From positions 124,001 to 188,000 of the IMG/VR virus record IMGVR_UViG_3300037264_008423: a stretch of DNA of 64,000 nucleotides, one strand, 5' to 3'. The notes beneath the pieces were generated by a model that was given only the letters and a program-made list of their open reading frames with translations, did not search any database and was not told the DNA's origin. The position numbers were made by a program, and so were the translations under genes. Positions 47,442 to 64,000 of the stretch are shown here, piece after piece (the stretch's first letter is position 1; each line of letters starts with the position of its first letter).

Positions 47442-47560
47442 TCACACCCGAAGACAACCCGGTGAACGAGAAAATGCTGCGCCGCCATGCGCGGCAAGTG
47501 CAGACCAAACTCAAAAGGATGTTTGGCACAGATGAAAGCGGCGAACCGCGCGCCGCTTAA
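47438..47560 (+). CDS. 40-aa hypothetical peptide
   Basis: MITPEDNPVNEKMLRRHARQVQTKLKRMFGTDESGEPRAA; ATGA-coupled; not in the track. Confidence 0.45.
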   Translation: MITPEDNPVNEKMLRRHARQVQTKLKRMFGTDESGEPRAA

Positions 47561-50004
47561 TCCTCGATCCGGTCCAAGGGGGGGCGCTGGCGACGGCGGC
47601 GCAGGCGGTGTCCTGGCCGCTCGCCGCCTTGGTCTTCCTCTGGCCGCCATTCCAGCTTCTCCAGAATGCTCATGGTCATGCTGCGCGGTTCCACGTTGCC
47701 CCGGAAGTGCTGATAGGCGGTCCCATGCCGATTCAGAAATACGAAGTAACGGATGATGTTTTGGGCATACTCGTCGTCCGTGGCGCACAGGCCAATGGCC
47801 ACGTCCACAATTCCCGCCTTCTCAAACGATCCCTGGAAGCTCTTCATGCTGGGCACCGCCAGGTCCACCGTTTCCTTGTTGCACCGGTCGGGCAGGATGA
47901 CCGGGCAGCCAAATTCGGAACCCAGGGCGCGCGCTTCCAGATAAATCTCACCCTGGGCGCGCCACTCGCTGGTCCGCTTGGGATCGGAACTGGGCTTTAC
48001 GGTTTCGGCGAAGTCGATGATGATGGCCTTGGGTTTGACGCCGAAGCGCGCGCTGGCAGTCAGCGCATGGGAGCGGATGTCGCCGCTAATCGTGGCCGCG
48101 CGCGAGGGAAAGCCTTTGATCAGCAGGGTGGAATTAAGCCTTTCGTTGGCCATTTGCAAGGCTTTTTCCGTAAACGTTTTCTTGTTCTGGTAGATCATGT
48201 CAAACGGCAGATCGGTCAGATTGCAGAGACAGCGCACGGCGGCAAGCTCCTGGCTGATCTCGCAGGGATAGTAGAACACGGGGGAGCCGGTGTTCTCGAT
48301 CATGTTCATGGCCAGGTTGATGCAGAAGGCGGTGTTATGGGTGACCGTGAAGTCGCTGTGCAGGTAGCGGCGATTTCCGTCGATTTCTATGCCAAACCAC
48401 TCTTGGTTGCCTACTGGCGCTACTTTTATCGTTGTTCTGTCCGAGGCTTTTTTAGAATCGGTTCCGTGCTTCCTGGCAACCTTGGTTGGAATTTCGCTGA
48501 TTCGGCCCTGAACATAAGTTCTATAGGCGATTGAGAATATCTTTTTTCCTTTTACGATGCATTGGCTGCGAAACGGGCGTATGAAGCTTTTAAAGCCTAA
48601 ACTTCTAGCAAGCCAGCAAGTATCTTCGCATAGCAGTCGGTTTGTGTCTGTAAAAATGAATCCACGGTTATTGGCGTGGCTACCGTCACTGTCAATTAGT
48701 CCGGCCAACAGTCGCAGGCGTGTGGCTTGGCTATTTATTTTGTAAACAAATGGGATATGCTTGTTGCGCAGGAGATTTAAAGCGCGCAGTCCGTTTATGA
48801 TCGGATTTTGGCCTTTGCCCTGTCCAACGAGAGACACCTGCGTGCAGCGCGTTTTCTTTCTATAGGTGGTTACGCGTAACCCTGCCTTAGTGGCAAAGTC
48901 GTGTAGAAAAGGCGTAATTTCCGGGTCATCGTCCCCTACGCTTATAGAAGCTTCATGCGAACTGCCATCCCCAAGCCAAAGACCAAGAAAATAAGGATCT
49001 AACGGCACGCTCACTGCGGGGAAGTCAACTCTGACTTTGTAACCTTTCCAATCTCGGTGGAAGTTTGCTGATTTTTTCGCATAGTCTTCAGCCGTAATCT
49101 CCAGAATTTCACCCAAGTGATACCTGTCTGTAAACCTTCCAACCGGCACCGTGCCCGGTGGTCTTTTCACACAGAGAATGTGGTCGTGGGTGACCGTATA
49201 GCTGTCGCCGTTTGCTTGGGTGACCCGATACATAGGGGCGCAGCCCCGGCCACAACTAAGCACGTTGCGGGGTGTTCCGTCGTCTCCCATGATTTTATCT
49301 CCGGGAGCAAGCTGGCAAATTTGTTTAATGGTGCCGTCAAACATTAGTATCTGCGTGTCAGGGCTTTCACATTTATATCTTTTAGGCGGAGCTAAAATTG
49401 CAATGAGCCAGCCGGGACCCCAGCCAAAGGGCCAGATGCGGTCCAGATCTCCAAAGCCAGTCTGGATGCCGTAGTCGCGCTTGGTCACGGTGTCCAGGAC
49501 CAGTTGGATGTCGCTCTCCCCGGATTTGATGCGGTAGCCAATGTCTTTGAGGTTCTGCCCCACTTTGAGCGCGTCCTCGAACAGTTTGGTAAACCCACCA
49601 GGGGGAGCCTCACCGGTTTTGTGGTAATTGATGGCTTTGTCGCAGGCGATGTAGAGGGCGCGCTCCCGCGCGAACTCCACGGTCTTTTCCACCGCGTAAT
49701 CCACGTCCGACGTGTCCAGCGTGGTGATCTTGCGCACAAAGGCCATGATGTTGCCTTCCTCCTTGGCGTCGGAGGACCGCAAGATGGCGTCGTAAACAAT
49801 TTGGCTGAGGGCTTCAGGCTGAGGGAAACGTCCGTTTTTATTCCAGTAGGCGAAGAGCGCGCGCGCTGTGGCCACACGCGGCACGCTGGTAAAATAGGCG
49901 GAGTTCAACGTTCCCGCGTTGTGCATGAACCTTTCCGGGTGCGCGATAATCGACGCCAGGAGCAGGTCTTGGAACGAACCGTCGTATGAGTATTTTTCAA
50001 ACAT
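47557..50004 (-). CDS. Replicative DnaB/gp41-like helicase, intein-containing
   Basis: TGFGDLD, APPKRYK/T P-loop, IKGFP, IIIDFAE, SFEKAGIVD, NRHG. Confidence 0.85.
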   Translation of the reverse strand: MFEKYSYDGSFQDLLLASIIAHPERFMHNAGTLNSAYFTSVPRVATARALFAYWNKNGRFPQPEALSQIVYDAILRSSDAKEEGNIMAFVRKITTLDTSDVDYAVEKTVEFARERALYIACDKAINYHKTGEAPPGGFTKLFEDALKVGQNLKDIGYRIKSGESDIQLVLDTVTKRDYGIQTGFGDLDRIWPFGWGPGWLIAILAPPKRYKCESPDTQILMFDGTIKQICQLAPGDKIMGDDGTPRNVLSCGRGCAPMYRVTQANGDSYTVTHDHILCVKRPPGTVPVGRFTDRYHLGEILEITAEDYAKKSANFHRDWKGYKVRVDFPAVSVPLDPYFLGLWLGDGSSHEASISVGDDDPEITPFLHDFATKAGLRVTTYRKKTRCTQVSLVGQGKGQNPIINGLRALNLLRNKHIPFVYKINSQATRLRLLAGLIDSDGSHANNRGFIFTDTNRLLCEDTCWLARSLGFKSFIRPFRSQCIVKGKKIFSIAYRTYVQGRISEIPTKVARKHGTDSKKASDRTTIKVAPVGNQEWFGIEIDGNRRYLHSDFTVTHNTAFCINLAMNMIENTGSPVFYYPCEISQELAAVRCLCNLTDLPFDMIYQNKKTFTEKALQMANERLNSTLLIKGFPSRAATISGDIRSHALTASARFGVKPKAIIIDFAETVKPSSDPKRTSEWRAQGEIYLEARALGSEFGCPVILPDRCNKETVDLAVPSMKSFQGSFEKAGIVDVAIGLCATDDEYAQNIIRYFVFLNRHGTAYQHFRGNVEPRSMTMSILEKLEWRPEEDQGGERPGHRLRRRRQRPPLDRIED
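48334..49371 (-). mobile_element. Intein (346 aa) with LAGLIDADG homing endonuclease
   Basis: Begins CESPDTQILMFDG, block B TVTHDH, LGLWLGDG and LLAGLIDSDG, ends VTHN followed by Thr; AT-richer than the extein. Confidence 0.95.
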
Positions 50005-56980: not shown

Positions 56981-57021
56981 AATTATTTTTGTTTACAAAT
57001 TCTACCCCATGCATCATCTTA

Positions 57022-59109
57022 ATGGAAAGAACCGAATATATGACCATAACTGACGCCCAACGGATCGTGGCTCTTAGAACTGAACTCACTGACCACGCCT
57101 ATCGCTATTACATCGCCAACTCGCCTTTTATTTCCGATGACGAGTATGACCTGAAGTTTAAACAGCTCGTGGAAATGGAGAATCAGCACCCCGAAATGTT
57201 CGACCCCAATTCGCCCACTCAGCGCGTTGGTTCGCCAATTCCCGGAGAGCAGCGCAAAATGCATCACCGGGTGCGTATGCTGTCGCTGGATAACACGAAC
57301 AGTCTTGACGAAGCGATGGATTTTCTGTCGGGTCAAGAGGGGAGAGAAGTGACTTTGGAGATGAAAATTGACGGCCTGAGCCTGCACCTGGACTACGAAA
57401 AAGGCAGGCTGGTCCGCGCCATCACGCGCGGCGATGGATCGGATGGCCAGGACGTGACGGAAAACGCGCGCACCATCCATACCCTCCCCCTGGTGCTGCG
57501 CCGACCCGTGGACATTTCAGTGCGCGGCGAGGTTTATTGGAGTCTGACCCAGTTTGAAAAGTATAACACGACGGTCGCCGAGGGAGACCGGTTTGCCAAT
57601 CCGCGCAATGGGGCTTCCGGCAGTCTTCAGCTCAAGGATTCCAGGGAAGTGGCGCGCCGCCACTTGAGTTTTGTGGCCTACAGCGTCCCCACGGATCTTC
57701 CCCCAGCCGTTACCACCCAGGAGGCCCTGCTGGAATATCTGGAAAGCCTGGGATTTATCAGCACCATGACGCTGCCGGTGCGCGCGGACATGGCCGGGCT
57801 GCCCTACTTGACCAGCGTGATTCAGCGGGAGGAGTTAGAGCGCGCGATTGGGTTTCTGAAAGAGTATCGGGCAAGCTTGGACCTGGAGACCGATGGCCTG
57901 GTGATTAAGCTTTCCTCCCTGGCGCTTCAGCGCGATTTAGGCGAGGGCACGCGCGCGCCTAAATGGGCGGCGGCCTACAAATTTCCCCCGGAGAGCAAAG
58001 AGGCGCTGCTCCTGTCCATCGCTCCGCAACTAGGTCGAACGGGACAAATTACGCCCGTAGCTAAAATCGAACCTGTGACGCTGGATGGCGTGGTGGTTCA
58101 GAGCGTGTCCCTGTGCAATCAGGACGAACTGGACCGGCTGGGCATTGATATCGGCGACTATGTTCAGGTCCAGCGCAGCGGCAAAGTGATTCCCAAGATC
58201 GTGGGCCTGGCGCGGCCCTCTCCTTCCAAGTCCAGCCCCCATCAGAGTTTTCAACTTCCCAAAACCTGTCCGTGTTGCGCCACAACTTTGATCCGCCCCC
58301 AGGGCATGGTCCACCTATACTGCCCCAACCCGGACTGCCCGGATCAGGTTTACGCTCGCCTGGTTTACGCCCTGGGCAAAGAGGCGCTGGACATTGACGG
58401 TTGCGGGGACATTACCGTGCGCTTGCTGGTGGAAAAAGCAGGTGTGAAGAAACTGTCCGATCTGTTCGCTTTAACCGAGTTTGGATTCATTAAGGGCGCG
58501 GCCCAGCGCAAGCTGAAGGAGGGTATCGAGGCCGCCAAGAAAGCTCCGCTTTGGCGCAAGTTGGCGGCGCTCAGCATCGAAGAAGTGGGCAGGGTCAAGT
58601 GCCAGGACTTGGCCACTAAATTCAGCCAACCGGTGCCTGCGGATGAATTACAAAAAGAGGAGACGGCGGAAAAGCCGGAAGACCAGCTCAACCCCATCCT
58701 GCGCATGATGAACTACTCCGGGCAGGTCGAACGCCTGATCGGCGCATCAGCTAAAGACCAGCTTATCAACTATCTGTATGACCATATCGACGAGCTGGAG
58801 CGCCTGGCCGATCACGGTTTTATTTTCAGCGCGGACGCCCGGTCTGCCGGTCCGCTCAGTGGCAAGACTTTTTGCATCACGGGCACGCTCATGAGCGGCA
58901 AGCGGGATGAAGTTAGCGCCTTGATCGAGAAGCTAGGCGGTGTGGTCAAGGGCGAGGTCACCAAGAACGTCGGGTTTTTAATTCAGGGGATGGGCGGGGG
59001 CAATAAAAAGGCGGCAGGCGCGCTCAAACACGGCACCCGGACGATCACTGAGGAGGAACTTTATCAGATGATGGGTGTCCCTATGCCGATCATGGGAAAA
59101 ATTGAGTAA
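57022..59109 (+). CDS. ligA: NAD-dependent DNA ligase
   Basis: YRYY, MLSLDN, EMKIDG, TRGDG, RGE, NPRN, DGLVIK, GRTG.ITPVA, Zn finger, C-terminal BRCT. Confidence 0.97.
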   Translation: MERTEYMTITDAQRIVALRTELTDHAYRYYIANSPFISDDEYDLKFKQLVEMENQHPEMFDPNSPTQRVGSPIPGEQRKMHHRVRMLSLDNTNSLDEAMDFLSGQEGREVTLEMKIDGLSLHLDYEKGRLVRAITRGDGSDGQDVTENARTIHTLPLVLRRPVDISVRGEVYWSLTQFEKYNTTVAEGDRFANPRNGASGSLQLKDSREVARRHLSFVAYSVPTDLPPAVTTQEALLEYLESLGFISTMTLPVRADMAGLPYLTSVIQREELERAIGFLKEYRASLDLETDGLVIKLSSLALQRDLGEGTRAPKWAAAYKFPPESKEALLLSIAPQLGRTGQITPVAKIEPVTLDGVVVQSVSLCNQDELDRLGIDIGDYVQVQRSGKVIPKIVGLARPSPSKSSPHQSFQLPKTCPCCATTLIRPQGMVHLYCPNPDCPDQVYARLVYALGKEALDIDGCGDITVRLLVEKAGVKKLSDLFALTEFGFIKGAAQRKLKEGIEAAKKAPLWRKLAALSIEEVGRVKCQDLATKFSQPVPADELQKEETAEKPEDQLNPILRMMNYSGQVERLIGASAKDQLINYLYDHIDELERLADHGFIFSADARSAGPLSGKTFCITGTLMSGKRDEVSALIEKLGGVVKGEVTKNVGFLIQGMGGGNKKAAGALKHGTRTITEEELYQMMGVPMPIMGKIE

Positions 59110-59169
59110 GCTGTAAAGGGTTGGCTGGCATGACTTTGCGTTGTCCGTAAAAATATTTTCATTTTTAAT

Positions 59170-59198
59170 TTGCATTGTTTACGAAAATAATTTAGTTT
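59170..59198 (+). promoter_or_regulatory. Sigma70-like promoter of the tRNA-array leader
   Basis: TTGCAT-N17-TAGTTT with AT-rich upstream sequence; 10 nt before ATG 59209. Confidence 0.55.
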
Positions 59199-59208
59199 CT
59201 GCTTGTCA

Positions 59209-59397
59209 ATGAGACGTAATGTCTTTACGGTGAAAGTGCAAATCAGAATGAACTTAGAGCGTCACATGTCAGTCAATTTAAAACCCGCCAATTCGGGACG
59301 GCATTATGCTGCCCTGATTCAAGGGTGGGATAGTGCCGCCGTGTTGTGCTTTAGCGCCCGTAGCACACGCGAACCAGGTCAGGAGGTAGCAGGATAG
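59209..59397 (+). CDS. Putative attenuator leader peptide (62 aa; alternative start 59248)
   Basis: Last codons GAG GTA GCA GGA TAG coincide with the antiterminator strand; contains all 20 amino acids. Confidence 0.55.
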   Translation: MRRNVFTVKVQIRMNLERHMSVNLKPANSGRHYAALIQGWDSAAVLCFSARSTREPGQEVAG

Positions 59398-59460
59398 GGT
59401 CGCACTCCAAAGAATTTTCATCCTGCTACCTCGAAAGAAGTCAGCAGGATTTTTCATTTT
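59383..59460 (+). promoter_or_regulatory. Antiterminator/terminator switch
   Basis: 59383-59395 pairs perfectly (13 bp) with 59420-59432; alternatively 59420-59450 forms a GAAA-capped hairpin followed by TTTTCATTTT. Confidence 0.75.
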
Positions 59461-59570
59461 ATGCCCCAGTGGGGACGAGAGCCAGGCCGTTAATCTGGTA
59501 AACGCCACAGTTAAAGACCCGTGGGTTCAACTCAGACTTGAGATCGTAGGTGTGTGTTCTTTGTTGAAAG

Positions 59571-59621
59571 GCCCCACGGCCTGTAGCCGCAAGCCGGTGA
59601 CCGCCGTGGGGCTTTTATTTT
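59571..59621 (+). terminator. Second terminator-like hairpin
   Basis: GCCCCACGGC-N22-GCCGTGGGGC followed by TTTTATTTT. Confidence 0.55.
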
Positions 59622-59696
59622 AAACCGTATTTAGAGAAAGAAAATTATGCCGACGCGCCAAGCCGAATCACAGAAGATCGCAGCCGCCGCGCGCAC

Positions 59697-59770
59697 GCGG
59701 GTATGGTCTAACAGCAGAACGAGGCGGTGCCAGCGCTTAGGTGGGGGTGCGATTCCCCCTACCCGCTCCA
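59697..59770 (+). tRNA. tRNA-Gly(GCC)
   Basis: GCGGGTA/TACCCGC acceptor, U73, CCA; anticodon loop GTGCCAG; T-loop TGCGATT. Confidence 0.9.
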
Positions 59771-59779
59771 AATTTAGAA

Positions 59780-59850
59780 TGCTACCGGTCTCAACGGTGA
59801 CGTGATTCAGACCACTGAGTCATCCGAGTTCTATCCTCGGCGGCTGCACC
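59780..59850 (+). pseudogene. tRNA-like element or degenerate tRNA
   Basis: T-arm CCGAG-TTCTATC-CTCGG, stem TGATTCAG/CTGAGTCA, imperfect acceptor stem. Confidence 0.35.
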
Positions 59851-59852
59851 GT

Positions 59853-59928
59853 GGGGGCGCATGTTCCGTAGCGGCGAGATTGCCTTGCAAGCAAACTGGG
59901 TCGGGTGCGACTCCCGTCACCTCCACCA
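59853..59928 (+). tRNA. tRNA-Ala(TGC)
   Basis: G3-U70, A73, CCA; loop CTTGCAA; T-loop TGCGACT; atypical D arm. Confidence 0.8.
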
Positions 59929-59934
59929 AATCTT

Positions 59935-59963
59935 TTGACAGATTTTTTTGCGCGCGGTAAGGT
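59935..59963 (+). promoter_or_regulatory. Sigma70-like promoter (leaderless)
   Basis: TTGACA-N17-TAAGGT, 5 nt before ATG 59969. Confidence 0.75.
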
Positions 59964-59968
59964 CAAGT

Positions 59969-60157
59969 ATGAAACGTAAACACTTTCTATATGGCCTGCT
60001 CGCAGGCGCGGCGTCCACTTTAATGCTGGTCTTGTTCCTAGGCGCGGCAGATCCCACTTGGCTGGACATCGCAAGCAGCCTGAAGCGGATCGCCCATTCC
60101 CTGGAGATGATCTCCGGCCAGCGGCCCGGTTGGAAAATTCCATACGCGGGTAAATGA
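59969..60157 (+). CDS. Small exported/membrane protein inside the tRNA array
   Basis: MKRKHFLYGLLAGAASTLMLVLFLGAA signal-like N-terminus. Confidence 0.7.
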   Translation: MKRKHFLYGLLAGAASTLMLVLFLGAADPTWLDIASSLKRIAHSLEMISGQRPGWKIPYAGK

Positions 60158-60162
60158 CCTTC

Positions 60163-60236
60163 GGGGCCATAGCTCAATAGCAGAGCGGGTCGTTCGCAAC
60201 GACTAGATCGGGGTGCGACTCCCCGTGGTTCCACCA
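60163..60236 (+). tRNA. tRNA-Ala(CGC)
   Basis: GGGGCCA/TGGTTCC, G3-U70, loop TTCGCAA, CCA. Confidence 0.9.
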
Positions 60237-60241
60237 GATTT

Positions 60242-60316
60242 CGGCTGCGTAGCTCAATAGCAGAGCGTGCGCGTCACATGCACAAGGAACCCGTGCGATT
60301 CGGGCGTGGCCGACCA
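60242..60316 (+). tRNA. tRNA-Val(CAC), apparent 8/4 fold
   Basis: CGGCTGCG/CGTGGCCG acceptor, CCCG/CGGG T-stem, loop GTCACAT, A73, CCA. Confidence 0.75.
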
Positions 60317-60332
60317 TTTTGTTCTAAAGCTT

Positions 60333-60776
60333 GTGATCAATAGTAAACAAATCAAAGCTGAATTAGCCGTCATAAAGGTGCAGGAAGCGGCACTTAAAAT
60401 GGGCCGGATATGCAGCAAACCTGTCATTGAAGGGACGCGCTACGATTTGATAGTTGATGACGGTAAGCGTCTTATGCGCGTTCAAGTCAAATACTGTGGT
60501 GGTTATTACGATGGCGTTGTTGCGGTTAAACTTAAAAGTTATGGTAGGCAGGGGGCAGACCGTAGCTATTGCGCCAGTGAAATCGACGCCGTTATAGCCT
60601 ATTCTGATGTGAATGACCGGCTTTATTGTCTGCCGATTACTATGCTAGCGGACAAAACAACCATCCGCTTGCGCCATGCTCGTCCTAGAAACAATCAAAA
60701 GCAGCGGATTTGGCAGGCAGAAGACTTTATATGGGGCTGTAGCTCAAATAGGCAGAGCAGCACGATGGCATCGTGA
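60333..60776 (+). CDS. PD-(D/E)XK homing-type endonuclease (group I intron-associated family)
   Basis: KAELAV, RYDLIVD, RVQVK, Y..SEID; GTG start 7 nt after GTTCT; 3' end overlaps tRNA-Ala(GGC). Confidence 0.85.
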   Translation: MINSKQIKAELAVIKVQEAALKMGRICSKPVIEGTRYDLIVDDGKRLMRVQVKYCGGYYDGVVAVKLKSYGRQGADRSYCASEIDAVIAYSDVNDRLYCLPITMLADKTTIRLRHARPRNNQKQRIWQAEDFIWGCSSNRQSSTMAS

Positions 60777-60809
60777 AGGTTGAGGGTGCGATTCCCTTCG
60801 GTTCCACCA
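60733..60809 (+). tRNA. tRNA-Ala(GGC)
   Basis: GGGGCTG/CGGTTCC, loop ATGGCAT, T-loop TGCGATT, ACCA. Confidence 0.85.
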
Positions 60810-60815
60810 ATTTTT

Positions 60816-61031
60816 GCCAATAAGCTGGGCGGTTGATCGAGACTTCCGTCTGGCCGAACGCGGTTACGATCAGCCGGGGGAACCGGTAAAACCTACGGCT
60901 GTTGGGAGCGAGGCTTGCCGAGCAGCAGGCCGCTTTGGCAGTATTTCACGGCACCCAACGTGGGACGGCGGCAGGCCGGTCGTGCGGTCTGTAAACGCGA
61001 CTCCGCCCGTCAGCGTAAAACAGGTGCCGTG
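60816..61031 (+). ncRNA. Structured ncRNA candidate (two multi-stem domains)
   Basis: CGGTTGATCG/CGATCAGCCG, GGCTTGC/GCAGGCC, CACGGCACC/GGTGCCGTG, CAGGCCG/CGGTCTG; lies between tRNAs. Confidence 0.55.
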
Positions 61032-61034
61032 TTT

Positions 61035-61110
61035 ACGGCAGTAGCTCAATTAGCAGAGCGGCGGTCTCCAAAACCGTTGGTTGGGGGTGCGAGTCCTCCC
61101 TGCCGTGCCA
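61035..61110 (+). tRNA. tRNA-Trp(CCA)
   Basis: ACGGCAG/CTGCCGT, loop CTCCAAA, G73, CCA. Confidence 0.92.
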
Positions 61111-61113
61111 TTT

Positions 61114-61353
61114 TTAGCGCGCGGGTTTTACTTTGCGCCGGGCGCGCGCCTTGCTTTTAGCAATGGGCGCTTGTTGGACATAACTCGGACACTTCGGGTT
61201 TTCGCAGTGACCGCCTTTTTTCACCAACCAGCCGCAAGCGCATTGGCTGAAGCAGTCACATTTTAAGAATCCCTGGGTGCCGCACGTGGGACAGACCACC
61301 GTGGCATCGATCAGGCGCTCAATGGCGCTCAAAGGTTTAGTTTGCATCGGCAT
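61114..61353 (-). CDS. Small Cys-rich protein antisense to the tRNA array
   Basis: CPTC..CDC..CACG..CENPKC. Confidence 0.6.
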   Translation of the reverse strand: MPMQTKPLSAIERLIDATVVCPTCGTQGFLKCDCFSQCACGWLVKKGGHCENPKCPSYVQQAPIAKSKARARRKVKPAR

Positions 61354-61378
61354 ACACTAAGTCATAGAATCAATTTTA

Positions 61379-61463
61379 CCCACAGTCCAGAAAGAGTGGA
61401 GGAAGGTCCCTACGCGCCACAGCGGAAGTAACGGGGCCAGGACCACAGTGGTTTGGACTGGGG
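61379..61463 (+). ncRNA. Rod-like hairpin RNA candidate
   Basis: CAGTCCAGA/TTTGGACTG, GTGG/CCAC, GGTCCC/GGGGCC nested stems with purine-rich internal loops. Confidence 0.45.
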
Positions 61464-61468
61464 TGAAC

Positions 61469-61556
61469 GGGCGTGTGACCGGAGCAGCAATCGGCACGGG
61501 CTGTAAACCCGTCGGCCTAAAAACCTACGCAGGTGCGAGTCCTGCCACGCCCCCCA
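61469..61556 (+). tRNA. tRNA-Tyr(GTA)
   Basis: GGGCGTG/CACGCCC, loop CTGTAAA, long variable arm, unusual C73, CCA. Confidence 0.88.
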
Positions 61557-61561
61557 TTTTA

Positions 61562-61650
61562 AGCGCCGTAGCTCAGAGGCAGAGCAAACCCAAAGCCTGT
61601 AACCAGGTGAGCGGTGGGGATGAGAGGTTCGAGTCCAATCCGGCGCACCA
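61562..61650 (+). ncRNA. tRNA-like RNA with expanded anticodon arm
   Basis: GCGCCG/CGGCGC-ACCA, canonical D arm and GGTTCGAGTCC, but a 24-nt insert in place of the anticodon loop. Confidence 0.6.
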
Positions 61651-61679
61651 TTCTTCCGTCTGGCGGTGTAATTAAAGGC

Positions 61680-62102
61680 ATGAACAGCAAGATTATCGGG
61701 GATATTTCCGAAGCATCCGTAATTGCGGCTCTTTTAAAATCGGGTTTGAACGTGTTAATGCCTTTCGGTGACAGGAACAGGTATGATATCGTGATTGAAC
61801 ATGACGGAAAATTTGAACGTGTGCAGATAAAAACAGGTAGGCAGCGCGGGAGAGTTATAGTCTATAATACACAGAGTTCAACTCGCGTTAACGGCAAACG
61901 GTGTGAATTAGGCTACCAAGGCCAAGTTGAAACTTTTGCGGTTTATCACCGTGAGCTGGATCGGGTCTATATGGTTCCTGTCGGTAAAGCAGCTACCGGT
62001 AAAGGGAGTTTGCGCTTGGGGCCTAAAGGCGGTTCTGGTGTAGGACCAAGATGCCTTTACGCTGATGACTATATTTTAAGGAGCGTTAGCTCAGTCCAGT
62101 AG
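61680..62102 (+). CDS. PD-(D/E)XK homing-type endonuclease (group I intron-associated family)
   Basis: GDISEA, PFGDRNRYDIVIE, RVQIKTG; GTAATTA 5 nt upstream; 3' end overlaps tRNA-Asp. Confidence 0.88.
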   Translation: MNSKIIGDISEASVIAALLKSGLNVLMPFGDRNRYDIVIEHDGKFERVQIKTGRQRGRVIVYNTQSSTRVNGKRCELGYQGQVETFAVYHRELDRVYMVPVGKAATGKGSLRLGPKGGSGVGPRCLYADDYILRSVSSVQ

Positions 62103-62156
62103 AGCAATCGACTGTCTATCGAAAGGTCAGGGGAGCAAAGCCCCTACGCTCCGCCA
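62080..62156 (+). tRNA. tRNA-Asp(GTC)
   Basis: GGAGCGT/ACGCTCC, loop CTGTCTA, G73, CCA; aberrant T-loop AGCAAAG. Confidence 0.85.
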
Positions 62157-62159
62157 TTT

Positions 62160-62268
62160 TTGCTTCCACAGCGCCGCCCCTGAAAGCGGCGACTGTTACG
62201 ATCCAGACAGGACAGATCGAGCCGGTTAAATAGAGTCCTTCTTTAATTGGCGGACAGCATGGAAGCAA
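62160..62268 (+). ncRNA. Four-way-junction RNA candidate with loop-loop pairing
   Basis: TTGCTTCCA/TGGAAGCAA closes three hairpins; loops contain complementary AGGAC/GTCCT. Confidence 0.6.
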
Positions 62269-62284
62269 TTTGTTCTTACGCGGT

Positions 62285-62899
62285 ATGACGAAACAGGAAC
62301 AGCTACAGGCCCTTTCTTACCGCGTGATCCGCTGCCGCCAGTGTCCGCACCTGGTCCTATCCAGGACGCAGACCGTGTTTGGCACCGGTAATCCCGACGC
62401 GGAGTTCATGTTCGTAGGAGAGGCACCCGGCAAAGATGAAGACCGGATCGGCGAGCCGTTTGTTGGCCGCGCCGGGAAATTTTTAACCAGCTTGATCCGC
62501 CTGATGGGATTTACCCGCGATCAGGTTTACATCGCCAACGTGCTCAAGTGCCGCCCGGACGCGGAATCAGGCAATCGCAAGCCGGAAGCGGAGGAGATGG
62601 AAAACTGCCTGCCGTTTTTAAAGGAGCAGATCCAGATCATCCAGCCCAAAGTTTTAATCGCCCTGGGCGCGACCGCCCTGGAGGGCTTGAAGGGCAAAAT
62701 CGCGCCCATCAGCCAAGTGCGCGGCCACATCTATGACTTTCACGGCACGCCCCTGGTGCCCACGTTTCACCCGGCCTACGTGCTGCGCAATTCGGCCACG
62801 GAAGTCCGCAGCCTGGTCTGGCGGGATTGCTGCCGCGCAATGGACTTGGCCGGTTATGACACCCTGGACCGGCGCGAATGGGTGCCGGACATGGCTTAG
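62285..62899 (+). CDS. Uracil-DNA glycosylase family 4
   Basis: CRQC.L, VGEAPG..ED..GEPFVGRAG, ANVLKCRP, PTFHPAY; GTTCT 8 nt upstream. Confidence 0.95.
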   Translation: MTKQEQLQALSYRVIRCRQCPHLVLSRTQTVFGTGNPDAEFMFVGEAPGKDEDRIGEPFVGRAGKFLTSLIRLMGFTRDQVYIANVLKCRPDAESGNRKPEAEEMENCLPFLKEQIQIIQPKVLIALGATALEGLKGKIAPISQVRGHIYDFHGTPLVPTFHPAYVLRNSATEVRSLVWRDCCRAMDLAGYDTLDRREWVPDMA

Positions 62900-64000
62900 G
62901 ATTGAGCGATGAAATTAAGGCTGGCGTAAATGGTTTCCCCAGCGCCAGTGAGCCTTTGCGCGCAGAGCCATAGCTCGTCGCGCCTGCCGCCGATGGACAT
63001 GCCCAGCCCAAAAAAGCCCGTCATTCCAATGTTGGCCAGGCTGGTGCTGGCAATCGCGTAAGCGGCCATAACCTCCGTGCCGCTGACACACGTGTTCGTG
63101 TTGGTCGTCGCGGCGGCATACTCCACGGCGCTGTTCGGGATGGGCACCCAGGAAATCGCGCCTGCGCCGTTGATGGTTGGGTTGACCACCAGGGAGCACC
63201 GCAGCGCGGCGTTGCTGGTGCAGGCGGCGGATAAGCCCGTGGGGCTGACCGTGGCGTGGGTGCCGCTCGTCGTGAGGCGGAGGCCCAGGACCGCGTATAA
63301 ATTCGCGTCGTTGCCGGTGGCAAAAGGATTAGTTCCCCGGCTCACCGCGCGCGGGTAGCCCGTATTGATAATGCCGCCCTCGCTAATGACCGTGGAGCAG
63401 ATGCAGCTCAGCGTGGCCGCCGCCCCCGCGCCGCTGCTGGCGAGTTCGTAGCGCAGCGGCAAATTCGGTGAGGAGGTATAAACGTCGGTGGACTGGTTGG
63501 AGTGGTGCGCGTCATGGACCCGGACCATGTGATGGCCAAGGATAAACCCGAAATGGACCGTGCCCACCCCTAGCCACTCAAAGTCGATAAACATGATTTG
63601 CGCTTTGGACAGATCCAGCGTAATCCCGGAGGGTCCGGTCCCGTCCAGCCGGTCCATGTTCCAATCCGCCTGAGCAAACGTTTCCGCCGCCAAGCCGTTT
63701 TTCCGCAGCACAAAGGCTGGTCCGCTGGCCGTCTGCTCCAATAAAAATCCGTTGAAATCGTCGAAGTAGCCGACACGCCGGGTAATGCCGGTGGAGGCGG
63801 CTCCCATCACGAAGGTCATCATGACCAACTGCGATTTTCCGGGTTGATAATTGAATCGGCGATAGGTCTGCCGGACGCGCGTGCCAGCAGTGCTGGCCGA
63901 GACCCCCAGCAGGACTTTGGCATTGGTCCGATCATGGGTGCTGGAGGTTCCCGTGCCGCTGGTCGGCTGGTCGTCCCACAGGTGGGGCGCGGCGTCCATG
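62896..64000 (-). CDS. Virion structural protein (5' end probably outside the window)
   Basis: RQT.RRFNYQPGKSQL, Q.DWN.DRLDGTGPSG, IDFEWLGVG.V.FG, PNLPLRYE pattern of large-phage structural proteins. Confidence 0.8.
   Translation of the reverse strand, partial: MDAAPHLWDDQPTSGTGTSSTHDRTNAKVLLGVSASTAGTRVRQTYRRFNYQPGKSQLVMMTFVMGAASTGITRRVGYFDDFNGFLLEQTASGPAFVLRKNGLAAETFAQADWNMDRLDGTGPSGITLDLSKAQIMFIDFEWLGVGTVHFGFILGHHMVRVHDAHHSNQSTDVYTSSPNLPLRYELASSGAGAAATLSCICSTVISEGGIINTGYPRAVSRGTNPFATGNDANLYAVLGLRLTTSGTHATVSPTGLSAACTSNAALRCSLVVNPTINGAGAISWVPIPNSAVEYAAATTNTNTCVSGTEVMAAYAIASTSLANIGMTGFFGLGMSIGGRRDELWLCAQRLTGAGETIYASLNFIAQS

Follow-up and report, generated by a model that had tools for sequence, protein, structure and literature searches.

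We identified a conserved element at the head of the tRNA gene array of an uncultured jumbo phage that is best explained, on comparative grounds, as a ribosome-mediated (leader-peptide) transcription attenuator, in which the last codons of a short reading frame can pair with, and thereby block, a transcription terminator. In 9 of the 12 sequence variants that we found in uncultured phages, the leader of 39-48 codons holds all 20 amino acids, as expected for a switch that turns on phage tRNA genes when translation falters at any codon. The element was examined in a 64,000-nt stretch (positions 124,001 to 188,000 of IMG/VR record IMGVR_UViG_3300037264_008423), hereafter referred to as the window. 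The original prediction, made from this single sequence, placed a promoter, a 62-codon open reading frame, a 13-nt antiterminator helix and a terminator sharing one of its arms in front of the tRNAs, and all of these features are present where they were placed (Table 1). The 12 variants, comprising the window and the loci L005, L007, L044, L061, L059, L045, L055, L052, L064, L053 and L066, all carry the element directly upstream of same-strand tRNA genes, whereas it is absent from 15 related loci that lack such an array, namely the ligase locus L006 and 14 loci carrying a Y16D homologue.

Table 1. Coordinates of the leader, its alternative helices and the downstream features in the window.
Feature	Position	Strand	Description
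Promoter-like site	59170-59198	+	TTGCAT (59170-59175), 17-nt spacer, TAGTTT (59193-59198); preceded by an A/T-rich stretch
Leader ORF	59209-59397	+	62 codons, ATG at 59209, TAG at 59395-59397; conserved part corresponds to the last ~43 codons (in-frame ATG at 59266)
Possible helix P0	59354-59403	+	GCGCCC (59354-59359) with GGGTCGC (59397-59403); encloses the last 12 codons and the stop
Arm A	59383-59395	+	5' arm of the antiterminator; last four sense codons plus first base of the stop codon; perfect 13-nt complement of arm B
Arm B	59420-59432	+	Shared by the antiterminator (with A) and the terminator (with C)
Terminator T1	59420-59460	+	Hairpin 59420-59450 (8-bp outer stem formed by the first 8 nt of B and arm C, 59443-59450; inner pairs; GAAA loop), then T-run 59451-59460
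Domain 2	59461-59570	+	Conserved structured RNA
Hairpin H1	59464-59474	+	Domain 2
Hairpin H2	59481-59499	+	Domain 2; 7-nt loop CCGTTAA
Hairpin H3	59505-59510 with 59519-59524	+	Domain 2; CCGTGGG at 59519-59525
Hairpin H4	59531-59542	+	Domain 2
BoxA-like segment	59555-59568	+	Single-stranded TGTTCTTTGTTGAA; GTTCTTTG at 59556-59563
Hairpin T2	59571-59621	+	Hairpin 59571-59612, 10-bp GC stem around a branched interior, then TTTTATTTT; T-run 59613-59621
Remnant of Y16D-like gene	59627-59696	+	GTATTTA (59627-59633) and first ~16 codons (ATG 59647) of a lost gene, running into tRNA-Gly
First block of the tRNA array	59697-62153	+	Gly-GCC, Ala-CGC, Val-CAC, Ala-GGC, Trp, Tyr and Asp
Gene splitting the array	62896-63999	-	

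In the window, the RNAduplex energy of A:B is -25.7 kcal/mol, against -12.2 for the best of 193 other upstream 22-nt windows, and the region 59199-59640 as a whole folds with z = -4.3 against shuffles. In each of the 12 variants A is the best partner of B among all upstream windows, and A:B, a helix of 7-13 bp, is present in the MFE of the transcript ending at B, before C is made. The 3' end of A lies -1 to +6 nt from the first base of the stop codon (TAG or TAA), B starts 25-29 nt after the stop and the U-run 51-57 nt after it, a spacing that, given the footprint expected of a ribosome, would allow a terminating ribosome to cover A but not the terminator. On an unfitted MAFFT alignment the antiterminator is 85.8% paired with 5 pairs changed on both sides, and the terminator is 92.5% paired with 6 such pairs; no shuffle in 500 reaches either value, slid controls give 33-58%, and the covariation of the arms includes matched insertions. 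The two conformers have similar energies (-14 to -23 against -14 to -22 kcal/mol), and in the window the terminator folds at -14 kcal/mol when A is masked. A further possible helix, P0, is significant in 8 of 12 variants but weak in the window (P = 0.18), its register differs between lineages so that it could not be accepted as a column-conserved helix, and it crosses A:B rather than sharing a strand with it.

The leader is conserved as an open frame. All variants have a frame of at least 49 codons, only one of the six phases is stop-free in all 12 variants against totals of 9-34 stops in the other five phases, every indel is a multiple of three, and synonymous changes are in excess at third positions. 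The minus-strand ORF at 59278-59508 was rejected, as all antisense phases carry stops in several variants. The substitution pattern is nevertheless only weakly codon-like, and long runs are identical at the nucleotide level between relatives, so RNA-level constraints overlap the ORF. Most variants have no Shine-Dalgarno sequence, and translation must be assumed leaderless or SD-independent. The promoter, originally described as sigma70-like, is a weak call: it matches the sigma-70 consensus at only 6 of 12 positions and was not called by a consensus scan. The motif AAARTTCTTGCR is not repeated elsewhere in the window. An equivalent TTGC(A/G)N hexamer behind an A-rich TTCTTGC context does, however, sit at the same place in relatives, and the ATG lies 7-10 nt after the -10-like hexamer in the window, L005 and L007.

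The boldest element of the original prediction, a leader that samples every amino acid, gained unexpected support from the relatives. The 62-codon ORF of the window, with 20 different amino acids and 41 different codons, is not unusual on its own (P = 0.14 and 0.28 against uniform codons), as was originally cautioned. In 9 of the 12 variants, however, the last 30-41 codons of the leader already contain all 19 non-Met residues (the last 38 in the window), whereas the median number of codons needed is 94 for uniform random codons and 163 for this phage's proteins, giving P between 0.0004 and 0.012 per sequence. Codon diversity exceeds the uniform-codon expectation at P < 0.05 in 9 of 13 tests, and single-copy residues (C, D, F, H, I, N, W) occupy different alignment columns in different lineages. 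We acknowledge that the 12 variants form about 5 lineages, so that this statistic does not represent 12 independent trials, and that three variants have only 18-19 amino acids.

A blastn search of 59100-59700 against 50,697 phage records gave no match, and Rfam searches of 59000-62300 at the gathering threshold and at E <= 5 found only tRNAs. A 5-sequence profile of the leader peptide against 5.8 billion proteins and a 12-sequence profile against 1.84 billion representatives recovered nothing real beyond the window's own ORF, and there was no Pfam match. An exact 21-mer and a GGGTGGGATA-based pattern found only the window's contig in the viral contig collection, a domain 2 pattern found nothing in the genome contig collection, and a looser domain 2 pattern added four chance hits inside coding regions.

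Downstream of the terminator, domain 2 is a separate conserved structure. RNAalifold gives compensatory changes in H1 and H2, whereas covariation in H3 and H4 was read from the sequences. Neither ARAGORN nor the tRNA model supports domain 2 as a decayed tRNA, and a short ORF that begins at the conserved ATG after T1 and reads ...RAGP... in L005 and L045 was rejected because it is not in the same frame in the window. Hairpin T2 is likewise conserved with compensatory changes, and in L005 and L066 a tRNA gene starts within about 10 nt of it. The proposal that CCGTGGG opens this hairpin is not supported, as the pairing is not conserved, there is no conserved upstream competitor, and the heptamer is the 3' strand of a conserved local hairpin. 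The GTATTTA motif, also noted originally, is the 5' UTR of a downstream gene that the window has lost; relatives carry a 75-117 aa PF26092 gene here, with GTATTTA 5-8 nt before its start, of which the window keeps only the 'KIAAAA' N-terminus. A tblastn search of the Y16D-like protein against cultured phages gave no match.

Taken with moderate confidence, and in the absence of expression data for an uncultured phage whose host is unknown, we propose the following mechanism. Transcription starts near 59205 and the leader is translated while the RNA is still being made. If a ribosome reaches the last codons or the stop in step with RNA polymerase it covers arm A, B then pairs with C, and transcription ends at the U-run (about 59455-59460). 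If the ribosome is late, because initiation or decoding is slow at any codon more than about 8 codons before the stop, A pairs with B as soon as B emerges, the terminator cannot form, and polymerase reads on through domain 2 into the tRNA genes. As the leader carries every amino acid and hardly repeats a codon, the switch would report shortage of any charged tRNA, or general loss of translation capacity, rather than one amino acid, and would feed back on the supply of phage tRNAs. Since T2 is a strong hairpin with a U-run and no conserved competitor, read-through of T1 alone may not deliver polymerase to the tRNAs, and the minus-strand gene that splits the array means that at most the first block can be under this control. 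Domain 2 probably acts after the decision, and we propose that it is an rrn/nut-like loading site, a hairpin plus a boxA-like UGUUCUUUG, that lets polymerase pass T2 and the long untranslated array.

The closest known systems appear to be the leader-peptide attenuators of amino acid operons and pheST (trp, his, leu, thr, ilv and pheA; pheL in PMC3082878), with which the element shares a promoter-proximal short ORF, mutually exclusive conformers of similar stability, and an ORF end placed so that a terminating ribosome masks the segment that can pair with the 5' arm of the terminator. Here, however, there is no run of codons for one amino acid, and the leaders instead hold 18-20 different amino acids and 33-41 different codons; at 39-62 codons the leader is 2-4 times longer than classical leaders, the antiterminator arm is made of the last sense codons themselves, an anti-antiterminator (1:2) is not clearly present, and the genes controlled are phage tRNA genes. 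Attenuators that sense translation stress, such as those of Tn916 tet(M), B. subtilis bmrCD and vmlR, and mef/mel (PMC4335068), likewise seem to convert the pace of a ribosome on a leader ORF into terminator read-through, but respond to ribosome-targeting drugs, control resistance genes in bacteria, and have short leaders that are not compositionally complete. The T-box riboswitch also links tRNA status to a terminator/antiterminator choice upstream of translation-related genes, but it binds uncharged tRNA directly and needs no translation, and here there is no Rfam RF00230 match and no T-box bulge in the antiterminator. Domain 2 may resemble rrn leader and lambda nut sites (E. coli UGCUCUUUAACA; gamma consensus GYTCTTTAANA, PMC5725501; B. 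subtilis AUGAUCUUUGAAA, PMC13753749) in having a small GNRA-type hairpin followed about 10 nt later by the single-stranded boxA-like motif, ahead of a long untranslated RNA operon and just before a terminator-like hairpin. This match rests on a short motif that is not rare, the 8-mer occurring 12 times in the window against 7.3 expected. The core GTTCTTT is kept in 7 of the 11 variants with domain 2 (followed by A instead of G in L044), one lineage (L045, L055, L052) has AUUCACUAAAA instead, and domain 2 carries three further conserved hairpins with no counterpart in rrn leaders.

Other explanations were considered and appear unlikely. The element could be a nascent-peptide sensor in which the conserved C-terminal ~30 residues, about the length of the ribosomal exit tunnel, stall the ribosome at or near the stop in response to a specific small molecule or factor, the dwell time on arm A then setting termination and the amino acid completeness being incidental. 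Conservation is indeed confined to these residues, with R and E invariant and W and P nearly so, while the N-terminus varies in length and sequence, a pattern that the arrest peptides TnaC and SecM appear to share. However, the last four residues track the RNA helix rather than a peptide motif, W, P and other 'conserved' residues move or disappear in L053 and L066, and this reading does not explain why 9 of 12 leaders hold all 20 amino acids with relocated singletons. Equally doubtful is an RNA-only switch sensing a ligand, protein or tRNA, in which an aptamer-like fold would set A:B against B:C without translation and the open frame would be a by-product. The nucleotide-identical stretches without synonymous change, the extra covarying helices inside the ORF, the general lack of a Shine-Dalgarno sequence and the use of unpreferred codons (a CAI-like value of 0.55 against 0.70 for phage genes) are in keeping with this possibility, yet the single stop-free phase, the in-frame indels, the stop codon that always abuts A and the lack of any Rfam match speak against it, and amino acid completeness has no RNA-level rationale. 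Least likely is an ordinary small protein (or dual-function sRNA) gene with its own terminator and independently expressed tRNAs, since, although a promoter, an ORF and a terminator make a complete unit and T2 lies before the tRNAs, there is no room for a promoter between T2 and the first tRNA in L005 and L066, the element occurs only at array heads, no homologous protein was found in the searches above, and balanced, covarying alternative helices are not needed for a plain terminator.

A more far-reaching possibility, which we regard as tentative, is that the leader is a phage-encoded 'pangram' peptide that evolved to contain every amino acid and as many different codons as possible, such that a shortage of any single charged tRNA, whether from host anticodon nucleases, host shut-off or the phage's own codon demand, delays the ribosome, lets the antiterminator form and switches on the replacement tRNA genes. 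This would be a homeostatic, pool-wide tRNA sensor, followed by a nut-like site that commits polymerase to the whole array.

Phage tRNA genes are now seen as tools against codon mismatch and against host tRNA-cleaving defences, but little is known about how their expression is controlled. With no precedent found in Rfam or in the searchable literature, this element would be the first attenuator described for a phage tRNA array, and the first leader peptide built to sample the whole amino acid and codon repertoire rather than one amino acid. It offers a directly testable design principle for sensing global translation capacity and a compact part (about 250 nt) for synthetic biology, and it also suggests that phages regulate tRNA supply by feedback rather than expressing it constitutively.

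The element lies between an NAD-dependent DNA ligase gene and the first tRNA gene of a 238-kb contig (IMGVR_UViG_3300037264_008423) from an uncultured jumbo phage, whose family-A DNA polymerase is at most about 27% identical to that of any cultured phage. Elsewhere in the window, a DnaB-like helicase ORF carries Hint and LAGLIDADG homing-endonuclease domains and so probably contains an intein. ARAGORN and Rfam together find seven tRNAs in the first part of the array, which continues beyond the window for more than 20 tRNA genes in all. The array spans about 16 kb and is split by protein genes, including one on the minus strand; it cannot be a single transcription unit. Two of the interspersed genes encode PD-(D/E)XK endonucleases (Pfam PDDEXK_5, E = 2e-20 and 9e-30) that look like mobile homing-type nucleases, and the tRNAs that flank them are found by Rfam but missed by ARAGORN. 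A divergent copy of tRNA-Ala(UGC) is called by neither; its anticodon loop, T arm and encoded CCA align with the intact genes of two related loci (L005 and L045; L-numbers designate the loci we recovered), but its D-arm region is scrambled.

Coordinates of the features discussed, in the window unless another locus is named
Feature	Coordinates	Strand	Remarks
DnaB-like helicase ORF	47557-50004	-	Hint and LAGLIDADG domains
NAD-dependent DNA ligase gene	56989-59109	+
-10-like hexamer to leader ATG	59193-59211; L005 8185-8200; L007 4501-4520
Region folded against shuffles	59199-59640
Leader ORF	59209-59397		62 codons, 20 different amino acids, 41 different codons
Internal ATG of the leader	59266		opens the last 43 codons
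Arm A	59383-59395		perfect 13-nt complement of arm B
Arm B	59420-59432		first eight bases pair with arm C
Arm C	59443-59450
T-run of terminator T1	59451-59460
Hairpin H2	59481-59499		7-nt loop
Hairpin H3	59505-10 with 59519-24		CCACAG with CCGTGG
Hairpin H4	59531-42		small, mostly GNRA-looped
boxA-like unpaired motif	59555-68		UGUUCUUUGUUGAA
Remnant of PF26092 (T4_Y16D-like) gene	59647-59696		runs straight into tRNA-Gly
First tRNA gene (tRNA-Gly)	starts at 59697
First seven tRNAs	59697-62153
Divergent copy of tRNA-Ala(UGC)	59853-59928
PD-(D/E)XK endonuclease gene	60267-60776	+
tRNA Ala-GGC	60733-60806		found by Rfam only
PD-(D/E)XK endonuclease gene	61614-62102	+
tRNA Asp-GUC	62080-62153		found by Rfam only
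Minus-strand gene splitting the array	62896-63999, and L068	-
Region of L064 in which domain 2 is replaced	L064 2290-2450		attenuator module and T2 kept

Our analysis confirmed every sequence feature of the original prediction, which proposed a translation-sensing attenuator in front of the tRNA array. The pairing of arm A, in the last codons of the leader, with arm B scores -25.7 kcal/mol, against -12.2 for the best of 193 other upstream windows, and the hairpin formed by B and C ahead of the T-run (terminator T1) folds at about -14 kcal/mol when A is masked. The region as a whole folds 4.3 sd better than shuffles. In contrast, the promoter, described originally as sigma70-like, is a poor consensus match (6 of 12) that is not called by a promoter scan, and the diversity of the 62-codon ORF is ordinary on its own (P = 0.14 for amino acids, 0.28 for codons).

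There is no DNA similarity in cultured phages and no matching Rfam family. Relatives were instead found through the ligase in metagenome contigs, through a conserved pattern in IMG/VR drawn from the structured RNA that follows T1 (domain 2), and through homologues of a small downstream gene (PF26092, T4_Y16D) followed back to their contigs, after which an nhmmer profile picked out the element. This gave 12 distinct variants in about five lineages: window/L005/L007; L044/L061/L059; L045/L055/L052/L064; L053; and L066. All 12 lie directly upstream of same-strand tRNA genes. A Y16D-like gene, of 75-117 aa in relatives, sits in between in eight of them; in L066 it follows the first two tRNAs, L005 has none and tRNA-His follows the second terminator-like hairpin (T2) directly, and the window keeps only about 16 N-terminal codons ('...QKIAAAAR'). 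Fifteen related loci that lack such an array, one carrying the ligase (L006) and fourteen carrying a Y16D homologue (L050, L051, L057, L058, L062, L063 and L069-L076), also lack the element.

The proposed switch is conserved and co-varies. In all 12 variants the last three or four sense codons form arm A of a 7-13 bp helix with arm B, with A ending -1 to +6 nt from the first base of the stop, B beginning 25-29 nt after the stop and also forming the 5' arm of a terminator hairpin, and the U-run lying 51-57 nt after the stop. The helix sequence differs between lineages, for example GCAGGAT, GCGGG, AAGCAGG, TTAGCGGG and GAACCGGG, and B and C change to match, including a matched one-base insertion. 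On an unfitted MAFFT alignment the antiterminator is 85.8% paired with five pairs changed on both sides and the terminator is 92.5% paired with six; no shuffle in 500 reaches either value, and slid controls give 33-58%. The two conformers are of similar stability, at -14 to -23 against -14 to -22 kcal/mol. In the transcript that ends at B, before C exists, the complete A:B helix is in the minimum-free-energy structure of all 12 variants. Naked or ribosome-free RNA is therefore predicted to read through, and only something sitting on A at the right moment favors termination. As B starts more than 25 nt beyond the stop, a terminating ribosome, given its known footprint, would cover A and leave B free. 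A further helix, P0, which joins codons about -13 to -11 to the bases just after the stop, is significant in 8 of 12 variants but not in the window; it could be a pause or synchronizing hairpin, though its register drifts and it crosses A:B.

Several lines of evidence suggest that the ORF is real. The phase of the leader has no stop over its last 40 codons in any variant, whereas the other two sense phases total 26 and 34 stops and the three antisense phases 14, 22 and 9. All indels in the peptide-guided alignment are whole codons, and the stop is always TAG or TAA at the same place. ATG starts lie 39-62 codons upstream in ten variants, while the other two have GTG or TTG. In the window, L005 and L007 the ATG lies only 7-10 nt after the -10-like hexamer, which suggests a leaderless or near-leaderless message; other lineages have a 5' hairpin of about 70 nt instead. 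Single-base codon differences at third positions are mostly synonymous (62 of 75), and overall synonymous changes are about 36%, against 24-26% in the shifted frames. We acknowledge that some points count against simple coding: the third-position excess is modest, long stretches are nucleotide-identical between relatives whose ligases are only 56-65% identical, most variants have no Shine-Dalgarno sequence, codon usage is unpreferred (a CAI-like value of 0.55 against 0.70 +/- 0.08 for phage genes), and no homologous protein was found in 5.8 billion or 1.84 billion sequences apart from the window's own ORF. We interpret this as a translated leader whose sequence is also constrained as RNA.

The composition of the leader is complete. 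The leaders of the relatives are shorter (39-48 codons), yet 9 of 12 contain all 20 amino acids and the other three have 18 or 19. As a measure that does not depend on the choice of start codon, we counted the codons back from the stop needed to see all 19 non-Met amino acids: 30 in L045, 32 in L052, 35 in L044, L061, L059 and L064, 38 in the window and L066, and 41 in L007. Random uniform codons need a median of 94 codons, and segments of this phage's own proteins 163; the chance of needing 30, 35, 38 or 41 codons or fewer is 0.0004, 0.002, 0.006 and 0.012 with uniform codons, and lower still with real proteins. Three caveats apply: the lineages share ancestry and are thus not independent trials, three variants are incomplete, and the long N-terminal extension in the window dilutes the signal, although the last 43 codons of the window's leader contain all 20 amino acids. 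Among 116 ATG-started ORFs of 39-62 codons in the window, only one has all 20. Codon diversity is also high, for example 39 different codons in 42 for L045, with P < 0.05 against uniform codons in 9 of 13 tests, and two-codon amino acids that occur twice or more usually use both codons (36 of 45). The single copies of C, D, F, H, I, N and W lie in different alignment columns in different lineages, which points to selection for having one of each, not for particular positions.

The 165 nt after T1 is a separate conserved RNA domain, in which hairpins H1 and H2 show compensatory changes. Hairpin H2, with a loop CCGNUAA on a 5-6 bp stem, is shared with 10 relatives and resembles an anticodon stem-loop with anticodon GNU (GAU, GUU or GGU in different phages), but has C instead of U at position 33; it could be a protein-binding site or a decoy, though nothing yet supports either idea. 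About 10 nt beyond H4 lies the conserved unpaired motif, which resembles boxA of rRNA leaders, namely UGCUCUUUAACA in E. coli, the gamma-proteobacterial consensus GYTCTTTAANA (PMC5725501), AUGAUCUUUGAAA in B. subtilis (PMC13753749) and an 8-nt core recognized by NusB/NusE (PMC3177189), and the order of hairpin then boxA is that of rrn leaders. In L005 and L066 a tRNA gene starts within about 10 nt of T2, so polymerase coming from the leader promoter must pass T2, for which no conserved competitor exists. A processive antitermination site is therefore an attractive, though tentative, reading; the 8-mer is not rare (12 in the window against 7.3 expected), one lineage carries a variant, and L064 has replaced domain 2 altogether with unrelated sequence while keeping the attenuator module and T2, so the two modules are separable. 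The CCGTGGG originally proposed as possibly opening T2 is thus the 3' strand of H3, and the GTATTTA noted before the first tRNA lies 5-8 nt before the start codon of the Y16D-like gene in relatives.

The element shares four structural features with leader-peptide attenuators but has no codon run, and it is not a T-box. Attenuators that sense translation stress, such as Tn916 tet(M), bmrCD, vmlR and mef/mel, are the nearest in logic, but they are bacterial, respond to drugs and have short leaders. Literature searches for attenuation or regulation of phage tRNA arrays, or for leaders containing all amino acids, found no precedent; what appears new here is the proposed sensing principle and the class of genes regulated. 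The attenuator interpretation is supported by conservation, covariation, coding signature and genomic linkage, and the idea of a leader that samples every amino acid is supported beyond what the single window could show, though translation of the leader, the direction of regulation and all physiology are inferred. The anatomy is that of a trp/his-type attenuator, with the antiterminator arm built from the last codons of the leader. As A:B is predicted to form whenever A is free, a delay at any codon upstream of roughly the last eight would give read-through, whereas reaching the stop in time would give termination, and a leader that samples every amino acid and many isoacceptors makes functional sense for that design. 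The signal may be a general slowdown, amino-acid starvation, tRNA cleavage by host defences or infection timing, which cannot be separated here. The proposed output is transcription into tRNA genes, so the circuit would be a negative feedback on translation capacity.
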